DNA of 64,000 nucleotides from Lepidodermella squamata (GCA_047495785.1 JBLDXI010000048.1:62001-126000), one strand, 5' to 3'. Shown: positions 4,393 through 64,000, counted from the stretch's first letter. Translations and numbers: made by a program. Notes: generated by a model from the letters alone, not told the origin.

Positions 4393-4669
4393 CATATCAC
4401 GCCGGCTATTGAGGCAAACCGCCGTCATGGCACCTCCTGTACAATTGCATTATAATAGTCCTTTATCATCGCGTCTTTTTTTGAGAGAAATTTGAATAAA
4501 AATGCAGCTTTTGGCAATTGTATTTCTTGCTTTGGATTCCGAAAACTTGGCCACTGGATTTTCATGGGTCAATTTGTCCAATTTTTTCGCCCTGATCAGC
4601 AATCAACAATAGTGGTCTTTGGAACTTTTTGGCGTGCTAAATTTATTGTGCAATAACATCGCCACCAAA

Positions 4670-4755
4670 CCCGCGATAGCTCAGCTGGTAGAGCGGAGGA
4701 CTGTAGATGCAACGCAGTTATCCTTAGGTCGGTGGTTCAAGTCCGCCTCGCGGGA
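4670..4755 (+). tRNA. tRNA-Tyr(GTA), 13-nt intron 4707-4719
   Basis: cccgcga/tcgcggg acceptor stem, ctGTAg, intron after position 37, A/B boxes. Confidence 0.95.
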
Positions 4756-4839
4756 GTTGACAGCTTTTTGAGTGAAAAATTGTGTAATTGCAATTACAAA
4801 TGTTTTGCTGAGGGCTCTCGTCCACGCTGTGATGCAACA

Positions 4840-4921
4840 GTCGCTATGCCCGAGTGGTTAAGGGGTCTGACTCGAAATCAGATGCGGTTTCCGCGCGTAG
4901 GTTCGAATCCTACTGGCGACG
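4840..4921 (+). tRNA. tRNA-Ser(CGA)
   Basis: Cloverleaf with long variable arm, ctCGAaa. Confidence 0.95.
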
Positions 4922-5019
4922 CTCAGTTTTTGGTTGCTGTAGCAGGAAGTAAGCTAGCTATTCAAACTACTACAATGACCGTAAACATCGTCTGACCATG
5001 ACTATGACACGCATGCAAG

Positions 5020-5091
5020 TCCTTGGTAGTATAGTGGTTAGTATCCCCGCCTGTCACGCGGGAGACCAGGGTTCGATTCCCTGCCAAGGAG
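5020..5091 (+). tRNA. tRNA-Asp(GTC)
   Basis: Cloverleaf, ctGTCac. Confidence 0.95.
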
Positions 5092-5152
5092 CATTCATTT
5101 TGCTGTAGCAGATCAAAATGCCTGTATTAAAATTTCCCTGCAAAAGTATTAT

Positions 5153-5234
5153 CGACGCAGAAGGGATTCGAACCCTCGCGGGCAGAGCCCAATGGATTAG
5201 CAGTCCATCGCCTTAACCACTCGGCCACCGCGTC
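5153..5234 (-). tRNA. tRNA-Ser(GCT)
   Basis: Cloverleaf, ctGCTaa, long variable arm. Confidence 0.95.
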
Positions 5235-5340
5235 CATATCAATTACAAGCTGCGTGGCGATCATTGAGCTGGCTTTGATTCAACTATTGGTGTAAGTTAC
5301 AAGAGCCCGCTGATCGAAATATCGCCTAACCGCGAAATCA

Positions 5341-5412
5341 GCCACGGTAGTATAGTGGTTAGTGTTCCTCGTTGTGGCCGAGGTGACCCTGGTTCGACTC
5401 CAGGCCGTGGCA
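5341..5412 (+). tRNA. tRNA-His(GTG)
   Basis: Cloverleaf, ttGTGgc. Confidence 0.92.
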
Positions 5413-5516
5413 GAGTCACACAGAACTCGAGACAGCGGCAGGCGGTTCAATTTTTTGCATACTTATTGACAGCGACGACGGGTTTTTGTAAAAAGCCAAG
5501 CCAAAAAGCTTACAGC

Positions 5517-5589
5517 TGATTCGGGCCGGGATTGAACCGGCGACCTTCTGCGTGTTAGGCAGATGTGATAACCACTACACCACCGAACC
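5517..5589 (-). tRNA. tRNA-Val(AAC)
   Basis: Cloverleaf, ctAACac. Confidence 0.95.
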
Positions 5590-5665
5590 GCTCGTGCCAG
5601 TGCTATTATTTCGCGGCGTATCGTCACCTCTATGCATGCCACCTCTTAGACTTTAAAAACGTTAA

Positions 5666-5749
5666 TGTCAGAAGTGGGATTCGAACCCACGCCAGTAGAA
5701 ACTGACTGCGACCTGAACGCAGCGCCTTGGACCGCTCGGCCATCCTGAC
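5666..5749 (-). tRNA. tRNA-Leu(CAG)
   Basis: Cloverleaf, ttCAGgt, long variable arm. Confidence 0.95.
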
Positions 5750-5901
5750 TGACGGAGTGGGATGAGTGCAACGTGCTTAGGCGAGCCCGGCATGTGAATC
5801 GAAAGCTACTACTGGCTGAATTCGATCTCGATCTCGAACGCGGCTGCGGCGAGTCTCGAGTGAAGCTGGATTGACGGAATGCGGAAAGAAGCCGCCAGGA
5901 A

Positions 5902-5983
5902 GTCGCTATGCCCGAGTGGTTAAGGGGTCTGACTAGAAATCAGATGCGGTCTCCGCGCGTAGGTTCAAATCCTACTGGCGACG
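5902..5983 (+). tRNA. tRNA-Ser(AGA)
   Basis: Cloverleaf, ctAGAaa. Confidence 0.95.
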
Positions 5984-6066
5984 AGTAATTTTGCAGTCGT
6001 GTTGGGCTCAAAAACACTCCAAAAAATCACTACATACTTGATTCTCAGCTGCTAAACTTCTGACCG

Positions 6067-6139
6067 GGCGCTGTGGCGAAATGGCTATCGCGTCGGACTT
6101 CGGATCCGAAGATTGTGGGTTCGAGTCCCATCAGCGTCG
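6067..6139 (+). tRNA. tRNA-Arg(TCG)
   Basis: Cloverleaf, ctTCGga. Confidence 0.93.
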
Positions 6140-6236
6140 ACAAATTTTGCACCCGTTGAGGGCGGCTTATTTGCCGCTTGGAAATCAGCAGCATCGAAAT
6201 CTTCTCCAGCTCTATAAACGGCCGCCATCAACATGG

Positions 6237-6309
6237 GCCTTCCTAGCTCAGTCGGTAGAGCATGTGACTTTTAATCACAGGGTCGGGGGTTCGAGTCCCC
6301 CGGAGGGCG
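6237..6309 (+). tRNA. tRNA-Lys(TTT)
   Basis: Cloverleaf, ctTTTaa. Confidence 0.95.
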
Positions 6310-6356
6310 CAAGCTTTTTCAAGGCAATTACCGTAACCGCTGCTATACGAAATCAC

Positions 6357-6429
6357 GGGGGATTAGCTCAAATGGTAGAGCGCTCGCTTAGCATGCGAGA
6401 GGTAACGGGATCGACGCCCGTATCCTCCA
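6357..6429 (+). tRNA. tRNA-Ala(AGC)
   Basis: G3:U70 pair, ttAGCat. Confidence 0.95.
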
Positions 6430-6507
6430 ATTTTTCTCGCAAAATTTCATAACCTGGCTAGGCTTCTCTACGCGAATAATGCCACTGCTGCAGAAATACC
6501 CAGCCTC

Positions 6508-6579
6508 GGCTCAGTAGCTTAGTGGTAGAGCGTCTGCCTAGTAAGCAGAAGATCGAGGGTTCGATCCCCCCCTGAGCCT
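6508..6579 (+). tRNA. tRNA-Thr(AGT)
   Basis: Cloverleaf, ctAGTaa; C7 run gives canonical length. Confidence 0.9.
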
Positions 6580-6654
6580 TGCTTGACTTTTTCGGCGGCA
6601 AGCTCTCTTTTTGCGTACCAAAACCTACAATTGACATTGCAAAGCTCAAAAACT

Positions 6655-6726
6655 TTCCCTGACCGGGAATCGAACCCGGGCCGCCGCGGTGAAAGCGCGG
6701 AATCCTAACCACTAGACCATCAGGGA
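6655..6726 (-). tRNA. tRNA-Glu(TTC)
   Basis: Cloverleaf, ctTTCac. Confidence 0.95.
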
Positions 6727-6819
6727 GCTGCTTCTTCATATGCGCTGTGGCATCAACGTAACAGGAATATGTTGGCAAAAACTGTGCATATGCATGAATG
6801 GCTTGAATTCAAAAATTAT

Positions 6820-6891
6820 GGGCCCGTTCGGGAATTGAACCCGAGACCTCTCGCACCCGAAGCGAGAATCATACCCCTAGACCAACGGGCC
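6820..6891 (-). tRNA. tRNA-Pro(CGG)
   Basis: Cloverleaf, ttCGGgt. Confidence 0.95.
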
Positions 6892-6976
6892 TCATCTAAA
6901 AGTTTTATGGAATTTCTTGCTCTTGAGGGCTGGTTGTTTGCCGTTTTGAAATATCGCTTTTATGAAAAAAGAAGCT

Positions 6977-7049
6977 CGCCGAGACCCGGGATCGAACCAG
7001 GGACCTTTAGATCTTCAGTCTAACGCTCTCCCAACTGAGCTATCTCGGC
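6977..7049 (-). tRNA. tRNA-Phe(GAA)
   Basis: Cloverleaf, ctGAAga; discriminator base is G. Confidence 0.93.
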
Positions 7050-7261
7050 GTGTGCAATGTGAACTTGCAGGGGCGAGCTACAGCTTTGAAGGCACACGCC
7101 CAAGTCCGAGTTGTGTGCACACTGGCGTTGCAGAGTTCTTTGGCACTGCGCATGGTTAGCTTCTACTCGAACGGCCTGAACTCCAGCGCACAAGGCATAA
7201 ATGACGGTACGAAATTCAAATGAAGAATTATGGCGAACCCTGTCAACATAACTAACGTCAA

Positions 7262-7333
7262 GGCCCGTTGGTCTAGGGGTATGATTCTCGCTTTGGGTGC
7301 GAGAGGTCTCGGGTTCAAATCCCGGACGGGCCC
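7262..7333 (+). tRNA. tRNA-Pro(TGG)
   Basis: Cloverleaf, ttTGGgt. Confidence 0.95.
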
Positions 7334-7413
7334 GATCTTTTTGGTTGATTAGCGACATACGCCTTGCCAGCAGAGGCCTGCGTATTGTTTCAGGCGGGGC
7401 AATGAATACAGCG

Positions 7414-7488
7414 GCATCGGTGGTTCAGTGGTAGAATTCTCGCCTGCCACGCGGGAGGCCGATGCGAGTTCGATTCCCGGCCGATGCA
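7414..7488 (+). pseudogene. tRNA-Gly(GCC) with disrupted T-stem
   Basis: ggcc-gatgcga-gttcga replaces ggcc-cgg-gttcga seen in copies 2 and 3. Confidence 0.8.
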
Positions 7489-7570
7489 ACGCACACAATT
7501 TTTGAGCTATCTATTTTGAACGGCTTTCAAACCACTAAAGTACTACGTGTCAGCTACAATGAATGTAACG

Positions 7571-7642
7571 TCCTTGGTAGTATAGTGGTTAGTATCCCCG
7601 CCTGTCACGCGGGAGACCAGGGTTCGATTCCCTGCCAAGGAG
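7571..7642 (+). tRNA. tRNA-Asp(GTC)
   Basis: Identical to 5020-5091. Confidence 0.95.
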
Positions 7643-7705
7643 AACCTTTTTCTCGCTCTTCGAAAACGCAATCTATTGGAGGATCTAAGAAGCAAAAAGC
7701 GAAAT

Positions 7706-7778
7706 CGCCCGATGTGGGGCTCGAACCCACGACCCTGGGATTAAGAGTCCCATGCTCTACCGACTGAGCTAACCGGGC
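7706..7778 (-). tRNA. tRNA-Lys(CTT)
   Basis: Cloverleaf, ctCTTaa. Confidence 0.95.
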
Positions 7779-7861
7779 TGAGACAGTGTCGTCGTCTACC
7801 CCGAAAATATGAGAAGTAGCAAAGCCTGTGTAGATCCAATGATGCTTTCTCTAAAAAAATT

Positions 7862-7884
7862 CGAGGCTGCCAGGAGTCGAACCT
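7862..7884 (-). pseudogene. 3' fragment of tRNA-Arg(ACG) at the cassette breakpoint
   Basis: Matches 31401-31423, then homology stops. Confidence 0.85.
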
Positions 7885-8884
7885 TCCATTTCCAATAATT
7901 TTTCGTATATGTAACTTCAAAGCTTGAATGCTATGCCCTTTTAATGAATAAGCAAATTATTATACAAGATTTGTCAGCATTTTCGTCTGCTGTTTCGTCG
8001 CGTTTGCTGTTTTGTGTCAGCTTCGATGTGTCACCCGAGTTTCAGTGAAAGCTGTGTTAATCTGAGTCGTCTAAAACGGAAGATTTTTAGTGGCTCGTGC
8101 AGAAAGCATGGACTTAACTTCACAAATTCGTAGCGATTCCGGTTCAGACTTCAGACCATTATTTTTCCTTTTTTCAAAGCGTCAGTTCCCGTTCGTTCTG
8201 ATCCAATATTCAGCACGGGAAATTCGGCTGCGCAGTGGGAAGTTTTCGAATAACAGTGAATTGCAGGAAAATAAGCTGAAATGGGTCAAAATTTTAGCGG
8301 GAAATTTCGCAGGTTTTACAAAGATTTCCACGACACTACCGGCGACAGTACGGGGTTCCCCCGCCGGCATAACAACCCAATTTTTCAAAATTTCGCAGTT
8401 GCGCAATCTGAACAATGCATGAAATAAGGACGAAATTAACAAGGGCCACCATACCCCTCCATCGTATAAAAACGACGTCAATCTTGGAGTAAACAAAATC
8501 GCATGTTTTTTCGTAGTTGAAATTTTTATTAGCAATTATTCTCATCATCAAATCGTGGCGTGTGTCGATCGATATAAGAAGAAGCTATGGCGCAGTCAGT
8601 CGCGAATATGCACACTCGAGCAACACACGATTCGCCGAGTCGGACTTGAATTACAATCTAGAGGAATAAGTACCGCCTACTACATCATAGTATGTAACAA
8701 TCGAAACGTGTGCCATCGACATTATTTCATACACGCGCAGCAACAACTGTACACGCCGCTGTTCGAGATAGGCACACGAAATGACACGAAATGAATAAAC
8801 GAATGCGAACAACGACGACGAAAGAACAACTAGAGAGAAAAAGAGAGTGAAGCCTGTACACAGCCTACAAAAGCGAGAAGATCA

Positions 8885-11800
8885 TCATCTCTGCTGTGCG
8901 CCGTACTGCCCGCCGGCATAGCTCTGCCACGGGTTCTGAGTCGCCGATGGCGCCGCTGCAGACTGCTGAGCCGCCGCCGCTTGCTGCTGCGATGGCTGTT
9001 GCCCAGTTGCCGCCGTCTGCTGCTGCGCCTGGGCCGCGGCCGCGTACTGGCTGTAGTACTGCTGCCACTGCGCCCACTGCTGCTGGTAGGCGGCCTGCTG
9101 CGCGGGTGTCATCGAGGCTGTCGAGGTGGGCGGCTGGCCGGGCGCGGCGGCGGGTGCGGCAGCCGATGCCGAGCCCGGCGTCGCTCCGCCTTGTTGCGCC
9201 TGCGCCGCTTGCGCCAACTGCTGCTGGTGTTGCTGCCATTGAGCACCGTATTGCTGCCACTGTCATAAACACAAAAATGCGAAAATCAATCACATGGATA
9301 AATAAATAATCGTCCTAAGGCGCCTTAACTGCTCAAAACATTACGTAAATGATTTTCCGATTTTTCAACTTTTCCCCTATTTTCCCGTAACTGAGTTCGC
9401 GAAACAAAAGTGATCAACAACAACAACAGAGAAAACCCGATGGTAAACGGTTCGGTATTTTCGGTACTTTACCATATTAAACCGATTTTTAAGGTATACT
9501 TAAAGTTAATTGTATTTCAGTTTTTTCCAGCACTCGTTTTTTTGCGAAAAACAAGTTGACATTCGCAGATATTTCAACTAGTCTTTTCACCAGTCTATGA
9601 TCGACAATTTGTTCAATCGGATATATAGATTGCATTCTAGCCCTATACTACAAGATCAGAAATCGCACTTACCCATCGCTGTTGCTCGGCTGTCCAGCCC
9701 TGTTGATTGGGCGGCGCCGCTCCAGCCGCAGCCGGTGCCGCGCTTGTCGGGGCCGGTGCCTGTGCCGGGGCCGCCGCTGGAACCGCACTAGGCTGTTGTT
9801 GTTGCTGGTGCCAGTTCGGAGGCGCCGTCTGCTGCTGTTGCTGCGGGGCGACAGGCCGCGGCGGTTGCGCCTGCCAATTCGGCGGCTGAACTTGCTGCTG
9901 CTGAGGGGGCTGAGTCGTCTGCTGTTGCTGTTGCTGCTGGTTCCACTGGTTCCACTGCTGCTGCGGCGGTGGCTGTTGTTGCTGTTGCTGAGCAGCCGGA
10001 GCCTGGTACCCACCGTATTGCGGCTGTTGCGGTTGTTGCTGCTGGTGGTGATAAGAAGACCCTACCGGCGCTGCGTACTGGCCCTGTTGCTGCTGCTGGG
10101 GTGCTCCCGAGGGCGGGCCTGGGCGCTGCGGCGGCTGACTGCTCGACGCCACCGGCGGCACCGTCGAAGAACCGCCCTGGTCCTGCGACCACCGGCTCTG
10201 GCGCGGCCTCTCGCCGTTCTGCGGCCGCTGGTTGTAGCCACCCTGCTGCGGCGGCGGCGGACCTTGCTGCTGCTGGGGAGGCGGTGGACCCTGCTGGTAG
10301 CCTCCCTGGTACCCTCCGCGAGGCGGGCCCTGCTGCCAGCCACGCTCAGGCGGCGGACCGCCCCGGCCCCCGCGATCGAAATCATCCCGCCGCTGGTCAC
10401 CCCAGTTGCCGCCTTGCTGCGGCGGCGGACCACCCCACCTCTGACCCGGGCCCATCGTTGGGTTGGGCAGCAAGCCCTCGCGAGGCGGCCCACCCCCACG
10501 GCCTCCCCGGTCCGAATACCCGCCTCGGTATCCCGTTCCAGCGCCCGGCGGTGGCGGACCACCACGCGGCGCCCCTCGACCGAACCCACGGCCCCGGTAC
10601 CCGCCGTCGTAACCGCCCCGCTCGCTCTGGTACCCCGGCTCGAAGCGGGGAGGCGGCGGCGGTGGGCCTCGCGACCGGTACCGATCAAACTCCGACTCGC
10701 GAAAATGCTCCGGCTCATCGCGGTTGTTCGGAAACCGCGGCGGCCGCCTGTCATCGCCGCCGCCCCGGCCCCGGTCGTCATGGTAGCCGCCACCCCGGCG
10801 CTCGGCGTACCCGCCCCGGCCAGGCCCGAACCGGTCGCCGCGCGTGCGGTCGCTGAAGCGGTCGAACGGCCGGCGGCCATACGACTCGGACGAGCGGCCG
10901 CCGTCGTTGTAGCGCGAACTGCGCGAGTTGTGGTAGTCGGAGCCGCCGCGCGACGCCGCCAGCTCCTCATCTCGCTCGCGCGCCTTCTCGAGCTCGCGGG
11001 CGCCGTCCTCGTTGTACTGTTTCACGAGGTCGCGCGCCTCCTGCTCCGGCAGCTCGGCGTACTCGATCGAGTCGAGGTAGCCGCCCGAGGTGGACGGCAG
11101 CTCGAAGCCGGCGCGCATCTCGACGATGGCGTCGAACGGGATGTCGCGGCCCTCGATGCGCTCGCGCTCCGCACACCGCCGCTTGTACTCCTCGTCGGGC
11201 GGCACGACGACGACGGCCTTGCGCTTGAAGCCGCCGAACAGCGTCATCTTGCGGCGCTGCGTCGACGTGTACACGTTCGTCTGGTCGAGGATGTAGTTGC
11301 GCGGCCGCGTCGCCGCCACTTCGATCAGCTTGTTCAGGCACCGCATCGCCGTGTCGATCAGGTCGCACATTTTGCCGCGCTGTTCGTCCTTGTGCACGCG
11401 CCGGCGCGGCTTGTCGTCGAGCCGCATCGCGTCGAGCACGTACGAGACGCCGAGCGCGTTGAAGCGCATCTCGGCGCGCTCGTGCAGCAGCTTGTTCACG
11501 TAGAAGGTCTTGCCGGCGGAGGGCAGGCCGCACATCATGATGACCTCGCACTCGGCCTTGGAGGCGGGCGGCAGGGGGTTGCGTTCGCGCTCCTCCACCG
11601 CCACGTCGTTGAGCATGACGAAGCCGGCGGGCAGGGCGAACCACGGCGTCGCTTTCTGGCCGAAGTTGCACTCGACCGAGACGTTTTTCAGGAGGAGGTG
11701 CGGCATGAGGGCGACGGGCAGCGGCGTTTCCTGGCCCTCGGTCGCGTTTGCCAGCAACTCCGCGCGGTTGAAAGTGAACGCGTGGACGAGAGGCAGCGGC

Positions 11801-17142: not shown

Positions 17143-18485
17143 ATGGCCTCAACCCAAGCAGCGAAAGCTAAAATGGATACTGACGACAGCAATGATCTTC
17201 CTGACGAGGTGTTGCGCATGAGCACGGACGAAATTGTGGCTCGCACCAGGCTGCTTGACAATGAGATTAGGGTTAGTTTCTATTGCTTCGTGTGTACCAA
17301 CATTTGAACATCCTGTTCATCCACTAGATCATGAAATCAGAAATCATCAAGGTAACCCACGAACTGCAGACTGAAAAAGAGCACATTCGCGAGAATGCTG
17401 AGAAAATCAAAGTCAACATGCATCTACCGTATCTTGTGGCCAACGTCATCGAAATTCTAGACACAGATCCCCAGGGAATGGAGGATGGCCTCGGCGCTGA
17501 TCTCGACGCGCAACGCAAGGGAAAGTCCGCTGTCATTAAGACTTCAACCCGCCAAACCTACTACCTACCAGTCATCGGCCTTGTAGACCCTGAAAATCTG
17601 AAACCCGGTGATTTGATCGGTGTCAACAAAGACTCGTATCTCGTTTTGGAGAAACTGCCCGCGGAATACGATGCTCGAGTAAAGGCGATGGAGGTCGACG
17701 AACGGCCGACTGAGCAATATTCAGATATCGGTGGCCTCGACAAGCAAATTCAGGAACTTATCGAGGCTGTAGTTCTACCCATGACGCATAAAGATCGGTT
17801 CCAGGCTTTGGGAATTCAACCGCCTAAGGGTGTTTTGCTCTACGGACCGCCTGGTACAGGCAAGACGCTGCTTGCCAGGGCGTGCGCTGCTCAAACGAAG
17901 GCAACTTTCCTGAAACTTGCCGGTCCTCAACTCGTGCAGATGTTCATCGGTGATGGCGCGAAACTCGTGCGAGACGCGTTCTCCCTCGCCAAGGAAAAGT
18001 GCCCCGCCATTATTTTCATCGACGAACTCGACGCTATTGGCACGAAGCGTTTCGATTCGGAGAAGGCGGGCGATCGCGAGGTGCAGCGTACCATGTTAGA
18101 ACTGCTCAACCAAATGGACGGTTTCCACCCGAACCAGGACATCAAAGTCATCGGCGCGACGAACCGTGTCGACATTCTCGACCCTGCCCTGCTGCGATCT
18201 GGCCGTTTCGATCGCAAGATCGAATTCCCGATGCCGACCGAGGAAGCTCGCGGTCGCATCATGCAAATCCACTCGCGCAAGATGAACGTGCATGCCGATG
18301 TGAACTTCGACGAGTTGGCTCGCTGCACGGACGACTTCAACGGGGCGCAACTGAAGGCGGTGTGCGTTGAGGCGGGCATGATTGCCCTGCGACGCGGCGC
18401 GGCCATCGTCATCCACGAGGACTACATGGAGGGCATTATCGAAGTGCAGGCGAAGAAGAAGGCGCATCTCACTTACTACGCCTAA
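17143..18485 (+). CDS. PSMC3: 26S proteasome regulatory ATPase subunit 6A (Rpt5); exons 17143-17271, 17328-18485
   Basis: [39 protein letters not shown]-terminal HbYX tail YYA. Confidence 0.97.
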
Positions 18486-47717: not shown

Positions 47718-47740
47718 TATCTCATCGTTGGTTACTATAG

Positions 47741-53830: not shown

Positions 53831-54044
53831 AAATTATCAAAATAATTTCATGAAGGGTCTGAAGATAATAGTCAATTTTGTTAGTTTTGTCCGTCGTCTT
53901 TATTTAGTCGTTAAATAATGGCATATTAAATAGCCAATCACATAATCTAGTTTCATGTTGCTGCGTTGAAATATCGTGCTACGAAACAAATGACAACAAT
54001 TTTTTTACTATTTTTGTTAATTTTTCATAGTAGATTTTGTAAAA

Positions 54045-56951
54045 ATGTTGGTTGAACCAAAAGTTTCGCTGCAAGAAGAAAGGAAGCGCCTTCGAGCTAT
54101 GAGGATAAAACAGGCGCGATCTCTTGCGAATGACGCGGCGAAGAAAATTCGGGACCGCGTTCGAAATACCCGCGAGAATTTGCAAAAGGAAGCCGAGGAA
54201 GAAGTTTTTCAGCAATTAGTCGCTAAACAAATGGCGATGATTGAAAGCGCGGCTGAAGAGGTCGAAGCCACTTACCAACAAGAGGTATATTGATGATTTT
54301 CAAACATTTTGGTAAATTCTAATTATTATTATTTTTTAGTTCGGAAGGGCTTATAACGAGGCGTCGTATGTCGCTCGTGATCAAGAAATGACGAAAATGG
54401 CGAAATCAGCGCAGGCTCGAAACGGAGCGAGAAAGGCGTCGATTCGATTCGAAGAGGCGAAAGCTCGTCTTGAAGCGGAGCGAGCCGAATCGTTGAAGGA
54501 AGAAACGTATCGGCGAGCTATCAAGCAGAACGCTCTCGAGAAAGAACTCGAACGCACTAAGGCAGTGATTTCTCGCCCGTTGCCGCCGAAAAATGAAATC
54601 GAAAAAGTCGCAGCTGAACTCGAAGAAACTAAACGTGAGATTCATTTTATTTCAAATATTAATCAATTTTTATTTTTTTCAACTTTTAGGTCGACCTTTC
54701 CGAGTGCTTGAAAGTAACGTTTACCAGGCAACGCGGTATCACTTGGGCTTCGAATGCGATGAGATCACGAAAGAGACGAAAATCGTTGAACAGCCTAGCT
54801 GGAACCAAAACAAACCGACCAAACCGCCGGTAAATCGCGTTAAAATGACAACATCACAGGATGACGATGAAGACGCGAGGCCTAAATCGAACGCACCACC
54901 GCAGCCGTCGAAGAAACAGCAGCCTGTTATGATTTTCCCGATTGTCGAAAAACCGGCTGATATTGAAGCCGCGAAATCTGTGGTGAATCAGCCGGAGATT
55001 GAGGCGGCTAAAGAGGCCGAGTTGAGGAAGAAACGCGAGGAATTGGAGGCGAAAGCGCGTCAACGCGGTGAGGTTGCGCTGAAGAAGGAGCAGGATTCCC
55101 GTCATTTCGAGAAATTGCTGTCTGATTTAACGACTTTGCAGCAAGTCTGGCGCCGGCATGAAGTTGTCAACCAGCCGCACGTTATCGGCGGCAAATTGTA
55201 CGTTGGTGCTGATTTTGTCGAGGCTGAAAAGAAGGCGCAGCAACAGCGGTTGGAAGCAGCGTTTCAGCCCATTGTCAAGGCGGCTGTTTCGAAACTACCC
55301 GAAGAGCCGTCGTTCCGCGCGGAGGATAGTGAAATTGCGTCGACTGTGATTTCGCCGGCGAAATCTGCGATTAAGGAGGACTCGGAGTCGGCGGTTGGCA
55401 CGTCGACGTCGAGTTTGGCCAGTTTTCGCTGGCAGGAGGCGTCGGTTACGAGTGAGGAGGAGCCGGCTGGTCAAACACGAAAACCGGACAGCGAATCGTC
55501 TTGCTCGGATTACGCGGCTCGCAGCTCAGTTTCAGGTAAAAAACTTAATTTTTATGTTAACATTCGAAATATTTCCTAAAATTTATTATATAACTAAAAA
55601 AATTGATATTTATTTTCAAATTTTTAAATTGCTTTTAAAAATTATTTCGATTGGGTTTTTTATTATATTTTTTGAATTCTATTCTCATAATTTGGAAATA
55701 TCTACATTTTGGCGATAATTGAGTGCTGAAATTCGTAAATTTCTTCACTTATTTTAATGAATTTTTTTTTATTTAGGTGAAAGCGAGGCTGAAGAGACCG
55801 TCTTGACCTCCGAACCACCCGCTCTCGAGCCGCAGAGTCCTCAGACCAAAGAAGCGCCGATTTCGGACGTCATCTCAAGCCACTCAAGCAGCGAGCCAGT
55901 TGAAACAACGTCATCAAACGCGAGCGAATCGAACCACCAAAACACGTCGTCAGAACTAAGCGGTGGGACTCTGCTTTCGGTGTCGCAAGAACAGCCTCAA
56001 ACCGGCCCACAATTGTCATCATACGACTGGTTGATGGAGCATAACCGTCTGCTAATGGCGAAAATTGACTCGCATCGCCGCCAAATCGAAGATCAGCGAG
56101 TAGCCCTCGCGAAACGGCTGGAACAGCTCAACATTCGAGTCGCATCCCCACTTCGAGTTTCGACGAAACTGCACGATCTGCAGCAGAGTCTGAGCACGGG
56201 CGGGTCGATTTCTGCCCCGAGTTCCGTCCAGCGGTTGAACGAAGACCGATCGATAATCGTGTTCTCGCCATCGCACTCTTCGTCGTTTTTGTCGGATATC
56301 ACCCCGAGACGGCTGCCAGCTTTCATGAATTCATCAACATCCTCCTCGACAATTTCTTCTTCTTCGTCGGCAAATTCGAGTAATCTAAGCACTGGCCTGC
56401 TGATTTCGACTGACCAAAACCGGGCTAATTCAGTGTCATCAACTCCGTTGCAACAGAAGGCGATTCAGAAAGAGGCGCTGTCCACCTTAACGGAAGAGTC
56501 GTCCCGTCAGGATTTCAGTCTTTTAACCGAAAAAACGGGCTCAAGCGGCACGAATAGCAACGTTATCGCTGGTCAAAAGTCGCAGAATTCCACGTCGAGT
56601 TCGTCGTCTTTCGGCTCGTTGATGATGGAGTATTACGGGCAACGGGGCGGGTCCGATCTGAGCAGCGGCGAGACGAAATCTCAATCGAACCAGCCGCCAG
56701 TTCTTCCGGCGCTCAGTTCTACCCCTCGCCGTGACGATAGCAGCCCGAAATTTTTGGATTTACCCGGTAAAACGAGTTCAGAGTCGAATTCTGGGTCGAA
56801 ATCGAGCTCCAGTGGGCCATCGCCACCCGCTTTTCGGTCGCTTCTGCTCGAAAACGAGAGCGAAGATGACGAGGATGATGAAACTGTGGATGATTTCGAT
56901 CTGCCTCCACCCTCTCTTGTCGGTGATGAAAGTTTCATGAATCAGTCTTAG
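54045..56951 (+). CDS. CEP295/Ana1-like centriolar protein (about 851 aa); exons 54045-54284, 54340-54634, 54690-55535, 55777-56951
   Basis: EERKRLRAMRIKQAR, YQATRYHL and ARQRGEVALKK..LQQ resemble my recollection of the CEP295 N-terminus; remainder is S-rich and disordered; junctions in frame. Confidence 0.65.
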
Positions 56952-57551
56952 AACGAATTTGTTGTTGTAAATATTCTGGATTTTCTTCACCGGTTACTTG
57001 TTGCGATCTTGCTGATAATAAGATTATGAAGAGCTTTCCGATGACGATTTTATACTACATTTTTTCTACGATGTCACCTTACGTTCTTATTTGCAATATT
57101 ATCATGATATTGGTCTTATTTTTTGAATACACACAAGCTCATTTTCTTCTGTTGAAATTATAAACTCTGCTGAATACCTGATATGATATGCTACCTCATC
57201 TTCACGTCACTGCTGTTGTATCATTTTTGCATGAAATTTCGCGCGCGCACCTGTTCACAATCATGACTATGAAGAGTTTTTTAGCAAGTTTTTTCGACTT
57301 GTTTTTTCTTGGTTTTTTTTACATCTTGGCACTTCCGGGCAAACTGTTGTTGAGAAGAGATTGTAAAATAAAAGAGCATTTGTTGAGAGATATTCGGCTT
57401 TTTACTTTGCTTTTGATTCCCAAGTTGAATCCTACTGGCGACGCTCAGTTTTTGGCTGCTGTAGTCTTTGCTGTAGCAGGGAGTAAGCTAGCTATTCAAA
57501 CTACTACAATGACCGTAAACATCGTCTGACCATGACTGACACGCATGCAAG

Positions 57552-57623
57552 TCCTTGGTAGTATAGTGGTTAGTATCCCCGCCTGTCACGCGGGAGACCA
57601 GGGTTCGATTCCCTGCCAAGGAG
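57552..57623 (+). tRNA. tRNA-Asp(GTC)
   Basis: As copy 1. Confidence 0.95.
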
Positions 57624-57684
57624 CATTTGTTTTGCTGTAGCAGATCAAAATGCCTGTATTAAAATTTCCCTGCAAAAGTTTTAT

Positions 57685-57766
57685 CGACGCAGAAGGGATT
57701 CGAACCCTCGCGGGCAGAGCCCAATGGATTAGCAGTCCATCGCCTTAACCACTCGGCCACCGCGTC
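57685..57766 (-). tRNA. tRNA-Ser(GCT)
   Basis: As copy 1. Confidence 0.95.
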
Positions 57767-57872
57767 CATGTCAATTACAGGCTGCGTGGCGATCATTGAG
57801 CTGGCTTTGATTCAACTATTGGTGTAAGTTACAAGAGCCCGCTGATCGAAATATCGCCTAACCGCGAAATCA

Positions 57873-57944
57873 GCCACGGTAGTATAGTGGTTAGTATTCC
57901 TCGTTGTGGCCGAGGTGACCCTGGTTCGACTCCAGGCCGTGGCA
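57873..57944 (+). tRNA. tRNA-His(GTG)
   Basis: As copy 2. Confidence 0.95.
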
Positions 57945-58043
57945 GAGTCACACAGAACTCGAGACAGTGGCAGGCGGTTCAATTTTTTGTATATTTATTG
58001 ACAGCGCAGCCGGGTTTTTGTAAAAAGCCAAAAAGCTTACAGC

Positions 58044-58116
58044 TGATTCGGGCCGGGATTGAACCGGCGACCTTCTGCGTGTTAGGCAGATGTGATAACC
58101 ACTACACCACCGAACC
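58044..58116 (-). tRNA. tRNA-Val(AAC)
   Basis: As copy 1. Confidence 0.95.
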
Positions 58117-58192
58117 GCTCGTGACAGTACTATTAATTCGCGGCGTATTGTCACCTCTATGCATGCCACCTCTTAGACTTTAAAAACGTTAA

Positions 58193-58276
58193 TGTCAGAA
58201 GTGGGATTCGAACCCACGCCAGTAGAAACTGACTGCGACCTGAACGCAGCGCCTTGGACCGCTCGGCCATCCTGAC
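58193..58276 (-). tRNA. tRNA-Leu(CAG)
   Basis: As copy 1. Confidence 0.95.
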
Positions 58277-58424
58277 TGACGGAGCGGGATGGGTGCAACG
58301 CGCTTAAGTGAGCCCGGCATGTGAATCGAAAGCTACTACTGGCTGAATTTATCTCGAACGCTGCGGCTGCGGCGAGTCTCGAGTGAAGCTGGATAGACGT
58401 AAAGCGGAAAGAAGCCGCCAGGAA

Positions 58425-58506
58425 GTCGCTATGCCCGAGTGGTTAAGGGGTCTGACTAGAAATCAGATGCGGTCTCCGCGCGTAGGTTCAAATCCTACTG
58501 GCGACG
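58425..58506 (+). tRNA. tRNA-Ser(AGA)
   Basis: As copy 1. Confidence 0.95.
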
Positions 58507-58589
58507 ACTATTTTTGCAATCGCTTCCGTTGCCAATTCCCAAAATGTCAGTTATATGCACACTTTTCTCCCAGATTCTCAAACTGAACG

Positions 58590-58662
58590 GGCGTTGTGGC
58601 GAAACGGCTATCGCGTCGGACTTCGGATCCGAAGATTGTGGGTTCGAGTCCCATCAGCGTCG
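58590..58662 (+). tRNA. tRNA-Arg(TCG)
   Basis: Two substitutions relative to copy 1. Confidence 0.9.
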
Positions 58663-58758
58663 ACAAATTTTGCACCCGTTGAGGGCGGCTTATTGCCGCT
58701 TGGAAATCAGCAGCATCGAAATCTTCTCCAGCTCTATAAACGGCCGCCATCAACATGG

Positions 58759-58831
58759 GCCTTCCTAGCTCAGTCGGTAGAGCATGTGACTTTTAATCAC
58801 AGGGTCGGGGGTTCGAGTCCCCCGGAGGGCG
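58759..58831 (+). tRNA. tRNA-Lys(TTT)
   Basis: As copy 1. Confidence 0.95.
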
Positions 58832-58908
58832 CAAGCTTTTTCAAGTCAATTACCGAAACCGCTGCTATACGAAATCATATTAGCAATAAATCGTCTGGTT
58901 ACTACCAC

Positions 58909-58981
58909 GGGGGATTAGCTCAAATGGTAGAGCGCTCGCTTAGCATGCGAGAGGTAACGGGATCGACGCCCGTATCCTCCA
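58909..58981 (+). tRNA. tRNA-Ala(AGC)
   Basis: As copy 1. Confidence 0.95.
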
Positions 58982-59058
58982 ATTTTTCTCGCAGAATTTT
59001 ACAACCTACTAGACTAGACTAGACGAATAGTGCCACTGCTGCAGAAATACCCAGCCTC

Positions 59059-59131
59059 GGCTCAGTAGCTTAGTGGTAGAGCGTCTGCCTAGTAAGCAGA
59101 AGATCGAGGGTTCGATCCCCCCCCTGAGCCT
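59059..59131 (+). tRNA. tRNA-Thr(AGT), C8 run
   Basis: One extra C relative to copy 1. Confidence 0.82.
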
Positions 59132-59206
59132 TGCTTGACTTTTTCGGCGGCAAGCTCTCTTTTTGCGTACCAAAACCTACAATTGACATTGCAAAGCTCA
59201 AAAACT

Positions 59207-59278
59207 TTCCCTGACCGGGAATCGAACCCGGGCCGCCGCGGTGAAAGCGCGGAATCCTAACCACTAGACCATCAGGGA
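59207..59278 (-). tRNA. tRNA-Glu(TTC)
   Basis: As copy 1. Confidence 0.95.
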
Positions 59279-59371
59279 GCAGCTTCTTCATATGCGCTGT
59301 GGCATCAACGTAACAGGAATATGTTGACAAAAACTGTGCATGTGCATGAATGGCTTGAATTCAAAAATTAT

Positions 59372-59443
59372 GGGCCCGTTCGGGAATTGAACCCGAGACC
59401 TCTCGCACCCGAAGCGAGAATCATACCCCTAGACCAACGGGCC
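59372..59443 (-). tRNA. tRNA-Pro(CGG)
   Basis: As copy 1. Confidence 0.95.
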
Positions 59444-59528
59444 TCATCTAAAAGTTTTATGGAATTTCTTGCTCTTGAGGGCTGGTTGTTTGCCGTTTTG
59501 AAATATCGCTTTTATGAAAAAAGAAGCT

Positions 59529-59601
59529 CGCCGAGACCCGGGATCGAACCAGGGACCTTTAGATCTTCAGTCTAACGCTCTCCCAACTGAGCTATCTCGG
59601 C
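59529..59601 (-). tRNA. tRNA-Phe(GAA)
   Basis: As copy 1. Confidence 0.93.
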
Positions 59602-59813
59602 GTGTGCAATGTGAACTTCCAGGGGCGAGCTACAGCTTTGAAGGCACACGCCCAAGTCCGAGTTGTGTGCACACTGGCGTTGCAGAGTTCTTTGGCACTG
59701 CGCATGGTTAGCTTCTACCCGAACGGCCTGAACTCCAGCGCAGAAGGCATAAATGACTGTACGAAATTCAAATTAAGAATTATGGCGAACCCTGTCAACA
59801 TAACTAACGTCAA

Positions 59814-59885
59814 GGCCCGTTGGTCTAGGGGTATGATTCTCGCTTTGGGTGCGAGAGGTCTCGGGTTCAAATCCCGGACGGGCCC
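59814..59885 (+). tRNA. tRNA-Pro(TGG)
   Basis: As copy 1. Confidence 0.95.
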
Positions 59886-59965
59886 GATCTTTTTGGTTGA
59901 TTAGCGACATACGCCTTGCGAGCAGAGGCCTGCGTATTGTTTCAGGCGGGGCAATGAATACAGCG

Positions 59966-60036
59966 GCATCGGTGGTTCAGTGGTAGAATTCTCGCCTGCC
60001 ACGCGGGAGGCCCGGGTTCGATTCCCGGCCGATGCA
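59966..60036 (+). tRNA. tRNA-Gly(GCC)
   Basis: As copy 2. Confidence 0.95.
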
Positions 60037-60118
60037 ACGCACACAATTTTTGAGCAATCTATTTTGAACGGCTTTCAAACCACTAAAGTACTACGTGTCA
60101 GCTGCAATGAATGTAACG

Positions 60119-60190
60119 TCCTTGGTAGTATAGTGGTTAGTATCCCCGCCTGTCACGCGGGAGACCAGGGTTCGATTCCCTGCCAAGGAG
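60119..60190 (+). tRNA. tRNA-Asp(GTC)
   Basis: As copy 1. Confidence 0.95.
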
Positions 60191-60253
60191 AACCTTTTTC
60201 TCGCTCTTCGAAAACGCAATCTATTGGAGGATCTAAGAAGTAAAAAGCGAAAT

Positions 60254-60326
60254 CGCCCGATGTGGGGCTCGAACCCACGACCCTGGGATTAAGAGTCCCA
60301 TGCTCTACCGACTGAGCTAACCGGGC
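60254..60326 (-). tRNA. tRNA-Lys(CTT)
   Basis: As copy 1. Confidence 0.95.
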
Positions 60327-60406
60327 TGAGACAGTGTCATCTAATCTCAAAATTTGAGAAGTAGCAAAGCCTCTGTTGATACAATGATGCTTTCTCTAAA
60401 AAAATT

Positions 60407-60479
60407 CGAGGCTGCCAGGAGTCGAACCTGGAATCTTCTGATCCGTAGTCAGACGCGTTGTCCATTGCGCCACAACCCC
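60407..60479 (-). tRNA. tRNA-Arg(ACG)
   Basis: As copy 2. Confidence 0.93.
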
Positions 60480-60576
60480 GCTGTGCATTTCGATACAACA
60501 GTTGTTCTCTTGTGGTTTCAGCTTATCCGTACTCGTACCAGGCATTTTCACCGCACTAGAGCTGTTCTTCGTGACA

Positions 60577-60593
60577 GCTTCTGTCGCGCAATT

Positions 60594-60633
<40 letters not shown>

Positions 60634-60650
60634 GAGCCCACCCAGGAGCG
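60577..60650 (+). tRNA. tRNA-Asn(GTT), G9>C change in the A box
   Basis: gcttctgtCgcgc versus gcttctgtGgcgc in copy 2. Confidence 0.85.
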
Positions 60651-61114
60651 CATTTGTTTGCAGTTGCAGCCGACGAAAGTGCTCAGACATAAAAGAATGC
60701 TCAGCTTTGTAATTCGTGTCGTTCTATCGCCACGGAGTCGTCATCATGAGAGAATCATGCTACCATAGTGAGTAAAAATTATTGGAAGCTGGCAGGAATC
60801 GAGCCTGGAAAGTTCCAAAACGTAACACGGTAGACATTCTCACTATCTCCGCCTTATGTCGAACATTTGAGCGGGGCGAGGAGAAGTTGTAAATTCATGA
60901 TTCGTGATGGGTCAATTGGAAGTGATGATTTCTGTGATGATTATCAATGGATAATTTTTTAGCGGTGTTAGCGTCAGGCTCTAGGATAGGAACCTTTTGG
61001 CAAGCTATACTTGACATACGCGGCCTTTCTGTTTATTTATTATACTCCGCATCATTCATCATCATGCTCTCACGTCAACCGCGTCAGCGAAGGTGCAACG
61101 TTGTTCAAGCGAGT

Positions 61115-61476
61115 CTAATATCTAATCGCATCGCGTACTCCAGCCGACCAATTAGTGTAGCCCTTTTCAATGCACGAAGTCAGCAGAGAACACTCGCCAT
61201 CTACAGTGAAGTACTTGAAAGCAGCGCAATTGCTTCGTGCGGCGCACGCTAAACGGCAAGGCCCTTGACCGATCGGGAAGTACACGGTCTCGATGACATT
61301 TGAGTCAGATCTGCAGTTGGAAGATGACATTCCGAAAATGACCTCCTCGGGGTTAGTCGCTGAAAACAAACAATATTTTAGAACACGCGGCAAAGTAGTC
61401 AATTATTACAAATAATAAGCCTACCTTCGGCGTAAGCAGCAATCAGAATAACGGCGATAGCGAATTTGATCGACAT
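61115..61476 (-). CDS. Small secreted protein (about 98 aa) with a PAN/apple-like Cys pattern; exons 61476-61425, 61359-61115
   Basis: Signal peptide MSIKFAIAVILIAAYAEA; CRLACAARSNCAAFKY..GECSL; GT-AG intron in frame. Confidence 0.7.
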
Positions 61477-62016
61477 AGTGGCTTCGGTTTTATATATCTC
61501 GGAGGCGGAATAACACAAAGTTGAACTTGAGAGATTTGATCATTTTCCTCACTTCAGCCCATGCCTTTTATTGGCGTGTCCCATTCAAACACAGCAAAAA
61601 CACTTGCGTCATTGATAGCAGCTGAAACAATGGGCGGTATTACCTTCGCGGAATTTCAGCAATAAACATGTAATAAACGTATAATAGGAATGAGCCATGC
61701 ATGTACGCTGCTGGCGAAATGCTTTTCATCTTAACAAAAAGCGGAAACATAATATAGAGCAATGTGGATAACCGGCCAGGTCACATGAATCGATCGCTGG
61801 TGCTATTTATTTTGACAGATGCTTAACTTGTTTGAAAACACTATCTGCCCGCGTAGCTGGTGTTATACTAAACATCTTAGGTGCAATCTAAAGTACGGAT
61901 GATAATTTTTTGCCGAGCATTTTTTTAACAACTCCGTAACCATGATGAATTTTGAGGAGCGGGTTTCACCAGTCACCAAAATCATCGTTAAATTGGGATA
62001 AAATTTGAGAAATTGG

Positions 62017-62132
62017 TGATGGAGTATTACGGGCAACGGGGCGGGTCCGATCTGAGCAGCGGCGAGACGAAATCTCAATCGAACCAGCCGCCAGTTCTTC
62101 CGGCGCTCAGTTCTACCCCTCGCCGTGACGAT
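62017..62132 (+). pseudogene. 116-bp duplicate of coding sequence from the last exon of the CEP295-like gene (56623-56738)
   Basis: Identical sequence, fused to cassette copy 4. Confidence 0.92.
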
Positions 62133-62264
62133 CGCCTTAACCACTCGGCCACCGCGTCCATGTCAATTACAGGCTGCGTGGCGATCATTGAGCTGGCTTT
62201 GATTCAACTATTGGTGTAAGTTACAAGAGCCCGCTGATCGAAATATCGCCTAACCGCGAAATCA

Positions 62265-62336
62265 GCCACGGTAGTATAGTGGTTAGTATTCCTCGTTGTG
62301 GCCGAGGTGACCCTGGTTCGACTCCAGGCCGTGGCA
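62265..62336 (+). tRNA. tRNA-His(GTG)
   Basis: As copy 3. Confidence 0.95.
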
Positions 62337-62435
62337 GAGTCACACAGAACTCGAGACAGTGGCAGGCGGTTCAATTTTTTGTATATTTATTGACAGCGCA
62401 GCCGGGTTTTTGTAAAAAGCCAAAAAGCTTACAGC

Positions 62436-62508
62436 TGATTCGGGCCGGGATTGAACCGGCGACCTTCTGCGTGTTAGGCAGATGTGATAACCACTACACC
62501 ACCGAACC
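62436..62508 (-). tRNA. tRNA-Val(AAC)
   Basis: As copy 3. Confidence 0.95.
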
Positions 62509-62584
62509 GCTCGTGACAGTACTATTAATTCGCGGCGTATTGTCACCTCTATGCATGCCACCTCTTAGACTTTAAAAACGTTAA

Positions 62585-62668
62585 TGTCAGAAGTGGGATT
62601 CGAACCCACGCCAGTAGAAACTGACTGCGACCTGAACGCAGCGCCTTGGACCGCTCGGCCATCCTGAC
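62585..62668 (-). tRNA. tRNA-Leu(CAG)
   Basis: As copy 3. Confidence 0.95.
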
Positions 62669-62816
62669 TGACGGAGCGGGATGGGTGCAACGCGCTTAAG
62701 TGAGCCCGGCATGTGAATCGAAAGCTACTACTGGCTGAATTTATCTCGAACGCTGCGGCTGCGGCGAGTCTCGAGTGAAGCTGGATAGACGTAAAGCGGA
62801 AAGAAGCCGCCAGGAA

Positions 62817-62898
62817 GTCGCTATGCCCGAGTGGTTAAGGGGTCTGACTAGAAATCAGATGCGGTCTCCGCGCGTAGGTTCAAATCCTACTGGCGACG
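62817..62898 (+). tRNA. tRNA-Ser(AGA)
   Basis: As copy 3. Confidence 0.95.
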
Positions 62899-62981
62899 AC
62901 TATTTTTGCAATCGCTTCCGTTGCCAATTCCCAAAATGTCAGTTATATGCACACTTTTCTCCCAGATTCTCAAACTGAACG

Positions 62982-63054
62982 GGCGTTGTGGCGAAATGGC
63001 TATCGCGTCGGACTTCGGATCCGAAGATTGTGGGTTCGAGTCCCATCAGCGTCG
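62982..63054 (+). tRNA. tRNA-Arg(TCG)
   Basis: gaaaTggc versus gaaaCggc in copy 3. Confidence 0.92.
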
Positions 63055-63150
63055 ACAAATTTTGCACCCGTTGAGGGCGGCTTATTGCCGCTTGGAAATC
63101 AGCAGCATCGAAATCTTCTCCAGCTCTATAAACGGCCGCCATCAACATGG

Positions 63151-63223
63151 GCCTTCCTAGCTCAGTCGGTAGAGCATGTGACTTTTAATCACAGGGTCGG
63201 GGGTTCGAGTCCCCCGGAGGGCG
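63151..63223 (+). tRNA. tRNA-Lys(TTT)
   Basis: As copy 3. Confidence 0.95.
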
Positions 63224-63300
63224 CAAGCTTTTTCAAGTCAATTACCGAAACCGCTGCTATACGAAATCATATTAGCAATAAATCGTCTGGTTACTACCAC

Positions 63301-63373
63301 GGGGGATTAGCTCAAATGGTAGAGCGCTCGCTTAGCATGCGAGAGGTAACGGGATCGACGCCCGTATCCTCCA
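63301..63373 (+). tRNA. tRNA-Ala(AGC)
   Basis: As copy 3. Confidence 0.95.
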
Positions 63374-63450
63374 ATTTTTCTCGCAGAATTTTACAACCTA
63401 CTAGACTAGACTAGACGAATAGTGCCACTGCTGCAGAAATACCCAGCCTC

Positions 63451-63523
63451 GGCTCAGTAGCTTAGTGGTAGAGCGTCTGCCTAGTAAGCAGAAGATCGAG
63501 GGTTCGATCCCCCCCCTGAGCCT
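63451..63523 (+). tRNA. tRNA-Thr(AGT), C8 run
   Basis: As copy 3. Confidence 0.82.
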
Positions 63524-63598
63524 TGCTTGACTTTTTCGGCGGCAAGCTCTCTTTTTGCGTACCAAAACCTACAATTGACATTGCAAAGCTCAAAAACT

Positions 63599-63670
63599 TT
63601 CCCTGACCGGGAATCGAACCCGGGCCGCCGCGGTGAAAGCGCGGAATCCTAACCACTAGACCATCAGGGA
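63599..63670 (-). tRNA. tRNA-Glu(TTC)
   Basis: As copy 3. Confidence 0.95.
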
Positions 63671-63763
63671 GCAGCTTCTTCATATGCGCTGTGGCATCAA
63701 CGTAACAGGAATATGTTGACAAAAACTGTGCATGTGCATGAATGGCTTGAATTCAAAAATTAT

Positions 63764-63835
63764 GGGCCCGTTCGGGAATTGAACCCGAGACCTCTCGCAC
63801 CCGAAGCGAGAATCATACCCCTAGACCAACGGGCC
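63764..63835 (-). tRNA. tRNA-Pro(CGG)
   Basis: As copy 3. Confidence 0.95.
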
Positions 63836-63920
63836 TCATCTAAAAGTTTTATGGAATTTCTTGCTCTTGAGGGCTGGTTGTTTGCCGTTTTGAAATATCG
63901 CTTTTATGAAAAAAGAAGCT

Positions 63921-63993
63921 CGCCGAGACCCGGGATCGAACCAGGGACCTTTAGATCTTCAGTCTAACGCTCTCCCAACTGAGCTATCTCGGC
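63921..63993 (-). tRNA. tRNA-Phe(GAA)
   Basis: As copy 3. Confidence 0.93.
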
Positions 63994-64000
63994 GTGTGCA

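Follow-up and report, generated by a model that had tools for sequence, protein, structure and literature searches.

The tandem tDNA repeat of Xenopus laevis has a length of 3.18 kb and carries eight tRNA genes of several isotypes on both strands. In Entamoeba, nearly all tRNA genes are organized in head-to-tail multi-gene arrays with at most five tRNA genes per unit and microsatellite-like spacers (PMC2652664). Phytophthora infestans and other oomycetes possess thousands of tRNA genes in tandem arrays, which were attributed to unequal crossing-over and differ between haplotypes and assemblies; their units contain one to three genes, for example a 513-nt Cys unit and an 850-nt Val-Ser unit (PMC9584435). 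The Ser-Tyr-Tyr array on chromosome 1 of Arabidopsis (PMC2886086) and the human tRNA repeat at 1q23.3 (PMC4041453) each occupy a single locus and have few isotypes per unit, with a copy number that varies by unequal recombination and units that evolve in concert or by local duplication. Mixed "islands" of several tRNA families are a recognized category, too (PMC13578239). In tandem gene families, including histone genes and rDNA, dispersed derivatives that stand alone are termed orphons in the account of Childs et al. (1981) given in PMC3225859. Tandem repeats shed circles consisting of exact multiples of the unit, and reintegration of these circles was proposed as a source of orphons (PMC3225859). 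Here we describe a stretch of 64,000 nucleotides from Lepidodermella squamata (the window; positions 62001-126000 of contig C48, JBLDXI010000048.1, in the assembly GCA_047495785.1 of 121 Mb in 151 contigs), in which four copies of a tRNA gene cassette are located among housekeeping genes. These copies are probably sub-unit remnants (orphons or mini-arrays) of a 4,505-bp tandem repeat of 27 tRNA genes that forms arrays nearby. Both tandem tRNA arrays and orphons are already known; the unusual features here are the 27-gene unit and the clear view of its solitary derivatives. Positions without a contig name refer to the window.

ARAGORN predicted 69 tRNA genes in the window and 70 when intron detection was switched on, while Rfam gave 71 tRNA matches including an intron-bearing Tyr gene (4670-4755) and one partial match (28407-28485). 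The 70 full-length genes are spread over the four copies of one fixed-order cassette, designated A to D, which together account for about 12 kb or 19% of the window. An earlier interpretation of this DNA (the sequence-only reading) had listed an order of 23 genes from Tyr to Glu-CTC, present in four copies with about 70 full-length genes on about a fifth of the window. The order was confirmed exactly, and the numbers agree with ours. Its statement that all copies share one orientation holds for the cassettes as wholes; within each cassette, the minus strand carries 9 of the 23 genes. In a self-comparison of the window, the cassette copies were the sole repeats of at least 150 bp, with pairwise identities of 94-98% and of 99.95% for C and D. 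Because A34 anticodons are present in the Ala, Val, Thr, Ser, Leu, Arg, Pro, and Ile genes and the Tyr gene has an intron, the cassette genes are nuclear eukaryotic tRNA genes.

Elsewhere in the genome, the cassette genes are preceded by genes for Gln-TTG, Pro-AGG, Trp, and Ile-AAT, which gives a full block of 27 tRNA genes. This block is repeated head-to-tail with a period of 4,505 bp at C10:2478-2518 kb, on C68, and at C48:0.3-27.5 kb. The 27 genes of the unit, located on both strands, have 26 anticodons and serve 18 amino acids, Met and Cys being absent. The longer master copy that had been predicted to supply Met, Ile, Cys, and Trp was thus found in part: the 4,505-bp unit adds Gln-TTG, Pro-AGG, Trp, and Ile-AAT, and Met and Cys are still missing. 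The 27 genes per unit compare with eight in X. laevis, up to five in Entamoeba, and one to three in oomycetes. The window cassettes correspond to genes 5-27 of the unit, strand pattern included, and every copy comprises 0.65-0.8 of one unit. One natural unit (C10:2508636-2513140) served as coordinate reference, no consensus being built. Compared with this reference, the window copies showed 95.7-98.1% identity over genes and spacers and a spacer divergence of 2.5-4.6%.

Cassette matches in the genome were found on contigs C48, C10, and C68. A pattern search of the whole genome for the Tyr gene gave 160 matches. These fall into arrays, two of them on C10 at 2478-2518 kb and 2692-2726 kb and others at C48:2.7-25 kb and on C31 and C24, with singletons near arrays. 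A 33-nt motif of the Phe/Pro-TGG spacer that is invariant in the subfamily had 27 matches in the genome, 16 at C10:2.405-2.586 Mb and 11 at C48:0.3-126 kb, and none outside these two segments. The spacer subfamily is confined to one neighbourhood, which is present twice in the assembly. The array nearest to the window ends near C48:27.5 kb, about 39 kb from copy A. At the start of C48 arrays occur in both orientations with palindromic junctions: at 16823/16836 of this contig two opposed arrays are 12 bp apart at the Gln gene, and at 3081/3248 a spacer of 166 bp separates Trp from Gln of the opposed arrays. The 4.5-kb head-to-tail period of the arrays was not present at the window loci. Copies A and B are single sub-unit pieces, and the 4392-bp period of C and D is due solely to 1.4 kb of non-tRNA flank that was duplicated along with C.

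The four copies differ in their extent and in the damage they carry. Copy A (4644-7884, plus strand; unit positions ~554-3802) contains 19 intact genes from Tyr to Lys-CTT followed by a 3' fragment of Arg-ACG. Its left end lies just after Ile and its right end within Arg-ACG, and a degenerate left edge that starts near 4628 resembles the Ile 3' end and terminator. The Gly gene of this copy has a 4-nt insertion at 7461-7464 and the His gene one substitution at 5364. Copy B (28392-32085, plus strand) contains 21 intact genes from Asp to Glu-CTC followed by a Gln fragment; it covers unit positions ~568-4364 and half a Gln gene and then continues with ~4074-4122. Copy B starts upstream of Tyr and ends within Leu-AAG, and a 204-bp deletion has removed the 3' end of Tyr and the whole Ser-CGA gene. 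Its point damage consists of a 3-nt insertion in Thr (30109-30111) and one substitution in Pro-CGG (30420). In copy C (57424-60659, plus strand; unit positions ~812-4026), 19 genes, Asp through Asn, are intact. The left end of this copy lies in the T-arm of Ser-CGA and the right end at the 3' terminus of Asn, the terminator of which is gone; its damage is limited to point changes, with private substitutions at 58594 and 58605 in Arg-TCG and at 60585 in Asn. Copy D (plus strand; unit positions 1117-4026) starts at 62131 within Ser-GCT and extends past the window end to window-equivalent position 65051, so that 11 of its 17 genes lie inside the window. Its right end is identical to that of copy C and it shows point changes only. 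The mapping to unit coordinates confirmed that the ends differ between the copies, as read before, and showed that they are eroded.

Copy D is a recent ordinary local duplicate of copy C plus flank, because 57739-62019 and 62131-66411 are 99.98% identical over 4281 bp and this duplicated stretch comprises the cassette together with 1.36 kb of non-tRNA flank (60660-62019, plus strand), which recurs at window-equivalent positions 65052-66411. The left junction of D (62013-62132, plus strand) is a 120-bp copy of 56619-56738. The duplication measures about 4.4-5.4 kb, and the arrangement would be consistent with about 5.4 kb having been duplicated in tandem and about 1 kb having then been deleted.

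The region of the window is present a second time on contig C10, the minus strand of which, from 2444000 to 2372000, shows collinearity with window positions 809-67096 at 93-98% identity. A nucleotide search of the genome had missed this copy, which was found by local BLAST (97% over 12-15 kb) and by protein search; blanks from the genome nucleotide search are unreliable here and were not used as evidence. The two-copy block spans at least C48:56-135 kb and C10:2447-2359 kb, and the proteins at both of its ends are identical between C48 and C10. On C10, cassette loci are present at the three places equivalent to A, B, and C, flanks included. Outside the cassettes, the two region copies differ mainly by two repeat insertions that occur only in the window, by filler indels at cassette edges, and by rearranged flank copies beyond C. 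The C10 copy is either the alternative haplotype or an inverted segmental duplication of large size, and other Rpt paralogues likewise occur as contig pairs.

The comparison of the two region copies revealed that the cassette content of each locus differs. The A locus holds 0.73 unit on C48 and 11.8 kb on C10, corresponding to about 2.6 tandem units; on C10 it also holds a Tyr fragment and an inserted receptor gene, and the left flank junction is common to both. At the right edge of copy A on C48, 593 bp (7885-8477) are filler or a junction indel, which had neither a counterpart in the C10 copy nor a match in the other genome regions compared. At the B locus the left flank is common to C48 and C10 to the same base, 28108, after which C48 has 283 bp of filler (28109-28391) and C10 has 14 bp plus unit positions 494-567. 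The B locus on C10 carries 24 genes and consists of unit positions 494-4505 and of Gln positions 1-69, a nearly complete gene, joined to 4074-4122. The B locus retains the trace of a second unit, which was lost by a 4-kb internal deletion. The C locus covers unit positions 812-4026 on C48 and merely 817-2592 on C10, again with a common left breakpoint. Since the A, B, and C loci have the same flanks in both region copies, they predate the split of these copies, and units and edges have been gained or lost at each of them since then. Judged from this collinearity, A, B, and C are three separate old loci, older than the C48/C10 split. They behave like mini-arrays, the edges of which were eroded by small deletions and filler insertions.

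The two region copies also bear on whether the arrangement could have been created by misjoining array reads into unique sequence during assembly. Tandem tRNA arrays are hard to assemble and both C48 and C10 end in arrays, which would favour such an artefact. However, the junctions between flank and cassette are the same on two contigs that were assembled separately and differ by 2-7%, the cassette ends are distinct and sharp, and the copies have private changes such as the 204-bp deletion in B, the insertion of 4 nt in Gly of copy A, and the point changes in C. We therefore regard an assembly artefact as extremely improbable.

In unit coordinates, the left ends of the loci are at 494, ~500, and 812-817 and the right ends at 3802, 3975, 4026, and 4122, with 4042 for the big array on C10; other junctions are at 8, 69, 77, and 264. 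The end positions are non-random, and as a result of their clustering all three loci lack the segment from Leu-AAG to Ile. At C10:2477.9 kb, a deletion inside one of the large array's units joins the Gln end to the Trp end (unit positions 77 to 370), which represents a further breakpoint at the Gln terminator.

Left ends within 494-817 and right ends within 3802-4122 fall in narrow parts of the unit, and the three loci have unrelated flanks. Both properties would be expected of a non-autonomous mobile element, i.e., a DNA transposon, a Helitron, or the like, which inserted three times with the tRNA genes as cargo. Its hallmarks were looked for around the copies. Neither terminal inverted repeats nor long terminal repeats were found there, as the sequence-only reading had already noted; inverted repeats as a sign of a transposon were rejected since they pair one tRNA gene with another, and a weak A/T-rich inverted pair of 30 nt was present at B alone. 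Termini common to the loci were not found, the ends lying within tRNA genes or a few bases from a gene end. In or beside the cassettes there was no open reading frame (ORF) for a transposase, which also agrees with the previous reading, and none for a reverse transcriptase or helicase. No target-site duplication was seen at the junctions read, where indel-eroded edges could have lost an old one. The cassette sequence is, moreover, a mere segment of the tandem unit, its subfamily is confined to one neighbourhood, and complete tandem units are present in the A locus on C10, all of which argues against a mobile element and makes it a very unlikely explanation. The proposal that a near-complete tRNA set spreads as one unit by an unidentified copy mechanism was not borne out: the copies are truncated pieces of a tandem repeat with eroded ends, and D is a local duplicate. 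The idea of a mobile "genetic-code cassette" is wrong and was removed by the analysis. The sequence-only reading had itself named confinement to this locus and local duplication including flanks as the outcome that would speak against it, and this is largely what was found, given that all 27 motif matches lie in the one neighbourhood and that D was duplicated with its flank; the flanks of A, B, and C are unrelated.

Homology extending into the flanks was observed for D versus C and for each locus versus its C10 counterpart, but not among A, B, and C, the flanks of which show no similarity to one another. Paralogy of the A-B and B-C intervals, as predicted by a tandem segmental duplication, was rejected. 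A reading in which the flanks of A, B, and C contain decayed remains of arrays was likewise rejected, as nhmmer found no unit remnants there at E ≤ 1.

The main rival to an origin of the copies by seeding from nearby arrays is fragmentation of one ancestral array, which would have been cut by inversions, translocations, or insertions and the pieces of which would have collapsed below one unit. The neighbourhood is rich in array rearrangements, with the palindromic junctions and the arrays in both orientations on C48, and the window copies are alike in orientation and phase. Foreign genes do enter arrays, as shown by an ORF of 793 amino acids with an ANF_receptor domain inside the A-locus cassette on C10. 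Yet the ends of neighbouring pieces are not contiguous, since the right end of A at unit position 3802 or 3975 is followed by a left end of B at 494, and the right end of B at 4122 by a left end of C at 812. The pieces are separated by 20-25 kb of unrelated, single-copy housekeeping DNA that lacks array remnants, and several independent events would be needed to restore the common orientation. These arguments make fragmentation quite unlikely in our view.

The receptor ORF (C10:2436682-2439063, minus strand) lies between the Tyr fragment and His and is absent from the window copy. A receptor paralogue of 80% identity at C10:2575.6-2577.7 kb adjoins another cassette locus. It seems that members of this expanded family of receptors settle within tRNA arrays or next to them.

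Derivation of the copies from the nearby arrays, which we favour, looks like ordinary repeat-array dynamics rather than a new mobile element or a new copy mechanism. For the first seeding of A, B, and C we infer the following course. An array would break between Leu-AAG and Ile, a part of the unit that would be recurrently fragile, and fragments would be released as linear pieces or as excised circles. Capture of these fragments at nearby chromosome breaks would seed the loci. Later, unequal recombination would have grown or collapsed each locus. Element-encoded transposition machinery plays no part in this process. The copies resemble orphons in being solitary, often truncated pieces of a unit that are located outside the main array and surrounded by unrelated DNA, and in the proposed origin by capture from an array. 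A tandem-array parent family exists, and the pieces lie outside it with unrelated single-copy flanks. Dispersal to distant genomic sites, as in orphons, was not found; the distance between the pieces and the arrays of the same contig is only about 40-100 kb. Further differences are that the cassette is a block of 27 RNA polymerase III (Pol III) genes, that one locus is a small array on C10, and that the genes are intact and homogenised with the arrays. Scattered sub-unit pieces among housekeeping genes are not described for Entamoeba in PMC2652664.

A more specific possibility is that the arrays seed themselves. A break site at Leu-AAG-Gln-Ile, caused for example by a clash of replication with Pol III transcription or by a replication origin, would release circular or linear pieces that are whole-number multiples of the unit minus the break segment. 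These pieces would re-insert nearby and start mini-arrays, which then grow, shrink, and are homogenised. We consider such a cycle possible but unlikely. If it exists, a near-complete decoding set would propagate locally without any element-encoded enzyme.

Several observations weigh against the derivation from arrays or limit it. Breakpoints in or at a tRNA gene make up 14 of the 17 mapped junctions, in a unit of which 45% is tRNA sequence, but they were counted post hoc. That A, B, and C have similar ends could reflect the copying of one founder rather than a fragile site. The junction evidence is at assembly level, from two independently assembled contigs, and C48:700 kb and C48:1.2 Mb have no second copy, which bears on the choice between haplotype and segmental duplication. 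Array fragmentation would also fit the data. Finally, the conservation of tRNA positions described below could have been imported passively from the arrays by conversion, without direct selection.

The individual copies are not uniform in their relationship to the arrays and to each other. Copy B differs from the units of the A locus on C10 at 2 of 1453 bp in the unit segment 791-2315 and at 65 of 1960 bp beyond it. Copy A is near-identical to the units of the A locus on C10 in 2512-3110 and 4-7% different in 3111-3800. A Sawyer-type runs test with 175 polymorphic sites gave p ≤ 2e-4 in 10 of 28 pairs, among them non-allelic ones such as B with units of the A locus and A with the B locus on C10. 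In a maximum-likelihood tree of a shared 1.4-kb segment, the copies did not cluster by locus. The copies are mosaics, which points to gene conversion; they exchange sequence among themselves and with the arrays.

Sequence variation is concentrated in the spacers. Variable columns amounted to 11 of 2036 in tRNA sequence and 211 of 2469 in spacers (Fisher p = 7e-43), i.e., they were about 16-fold less frequent in tRNA sequence. Between solitary copies, the divergence was 0.24-0.32% for tRNA genes and 4-6.4% for spacers. The spacers, which had been called conserved before, are 3-6% divergent, whereas the genes are nearly invariant. In the window, 56 of the 70 genes are unchanged from the array version. 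The altered genes are Gly in A and Thr in B, C, and D, with insertions of 1-3 nt in the latter, and His, Pro-CGG, Arg-TCG, and Asn genes with single substitutions. Of the 70 genes, 65 are followed within 30 nt by a run of at least four T residues, which lies at a median of 5 nt downstream; for control positions the share was 17%. The genes without such a run were those for His in all copies and the truncated Asn gene of C. For His, the 30-nt segments lacking such a run are 5413-5442, 28931-28960, 57945-57974, and 62337-62366, and these genes may terminate further downstream or be read through. The intact genes and terminators suggest that the cassette genes are, or recently were, working Pol III genes, which selection and conversion from array sequences together probably preserve.

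The 27-gene Pol III cassette can be seen here as long arrays, small arrays, and single truncated pieces at base-pair resolution. Two diverged copies of the region reveal changes in locus copy number, internal deletions, insertion of a gene into an array, local duplication, and conversion tracts. The locus thereby offers a system for asking how a multi-copy set of tRNA genes stays uniform. It also raises the questions of whether tRNA is supplied by the solitary copies or whether these serve as chromatin boundaries separating genes of RNA polymerase II, and whether breaks at tRNA genes drive local genome rearrangement.

The ORFs between the cassettes belong to ordinary cellular genes, in agreement with the earlier description of copies among housekeeping genes: they encode Rpt5/PSMC3, two sphingolipid desaturases, BUB1, PTEN, and NUP210. 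The main exon of Rpt5/PSMC3 (17331-18485, plus strand), a single-copy proteasome ATPase gene, is located between A and B. The Rpt5 protein is identical in the C10 copy of the region and shows 83-86% identity to its counterparts in annelids, molluscs, tunicates, and amphioxus and 97% to a protein from an ENA metagenome. The two genes for sphingolipid delta4-desaturases (32869-33555 and 36737-37579, both minus strand) are arranged in tandem just downstream of B. The segment 32100-34700 with the first of them has an 86% identical paralogous segment at C17:359.9-363.1 kb. Between B and C, a BUB1-like gene (38896-41775, plus strand), PTEN (44098-45597, minus strand), and NUP210 (48267-53477, plus strand) are present. 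The best named matches of PTEN were a haptophyte protein and one from a contaminant in a sturgeon assembly, with 54-58% identity over part of the protein.

Two repeat blocks have many 90-99% identical copies across contigs. One is a multi-copy block at 20675-24742, which includes an ORF with a zf-CCHC zinc knuckle at 21749-22924, and the other an 838-bp repeat at 46880-47718; the multi-copy sequence as a whole covers 20040-24742 and 46875-47720. As both are absent from the C10 copy of the region, they are recent insertions. A segment of about 2.4 kb at 9643-12072 has a G+C content of 70%, compared with about 45% for the genome, and is open on both strands; it is conserved in the C10 copy. Its minus-strand ORF of 809 amino acids contains an AAA_33 kinase-like domain.

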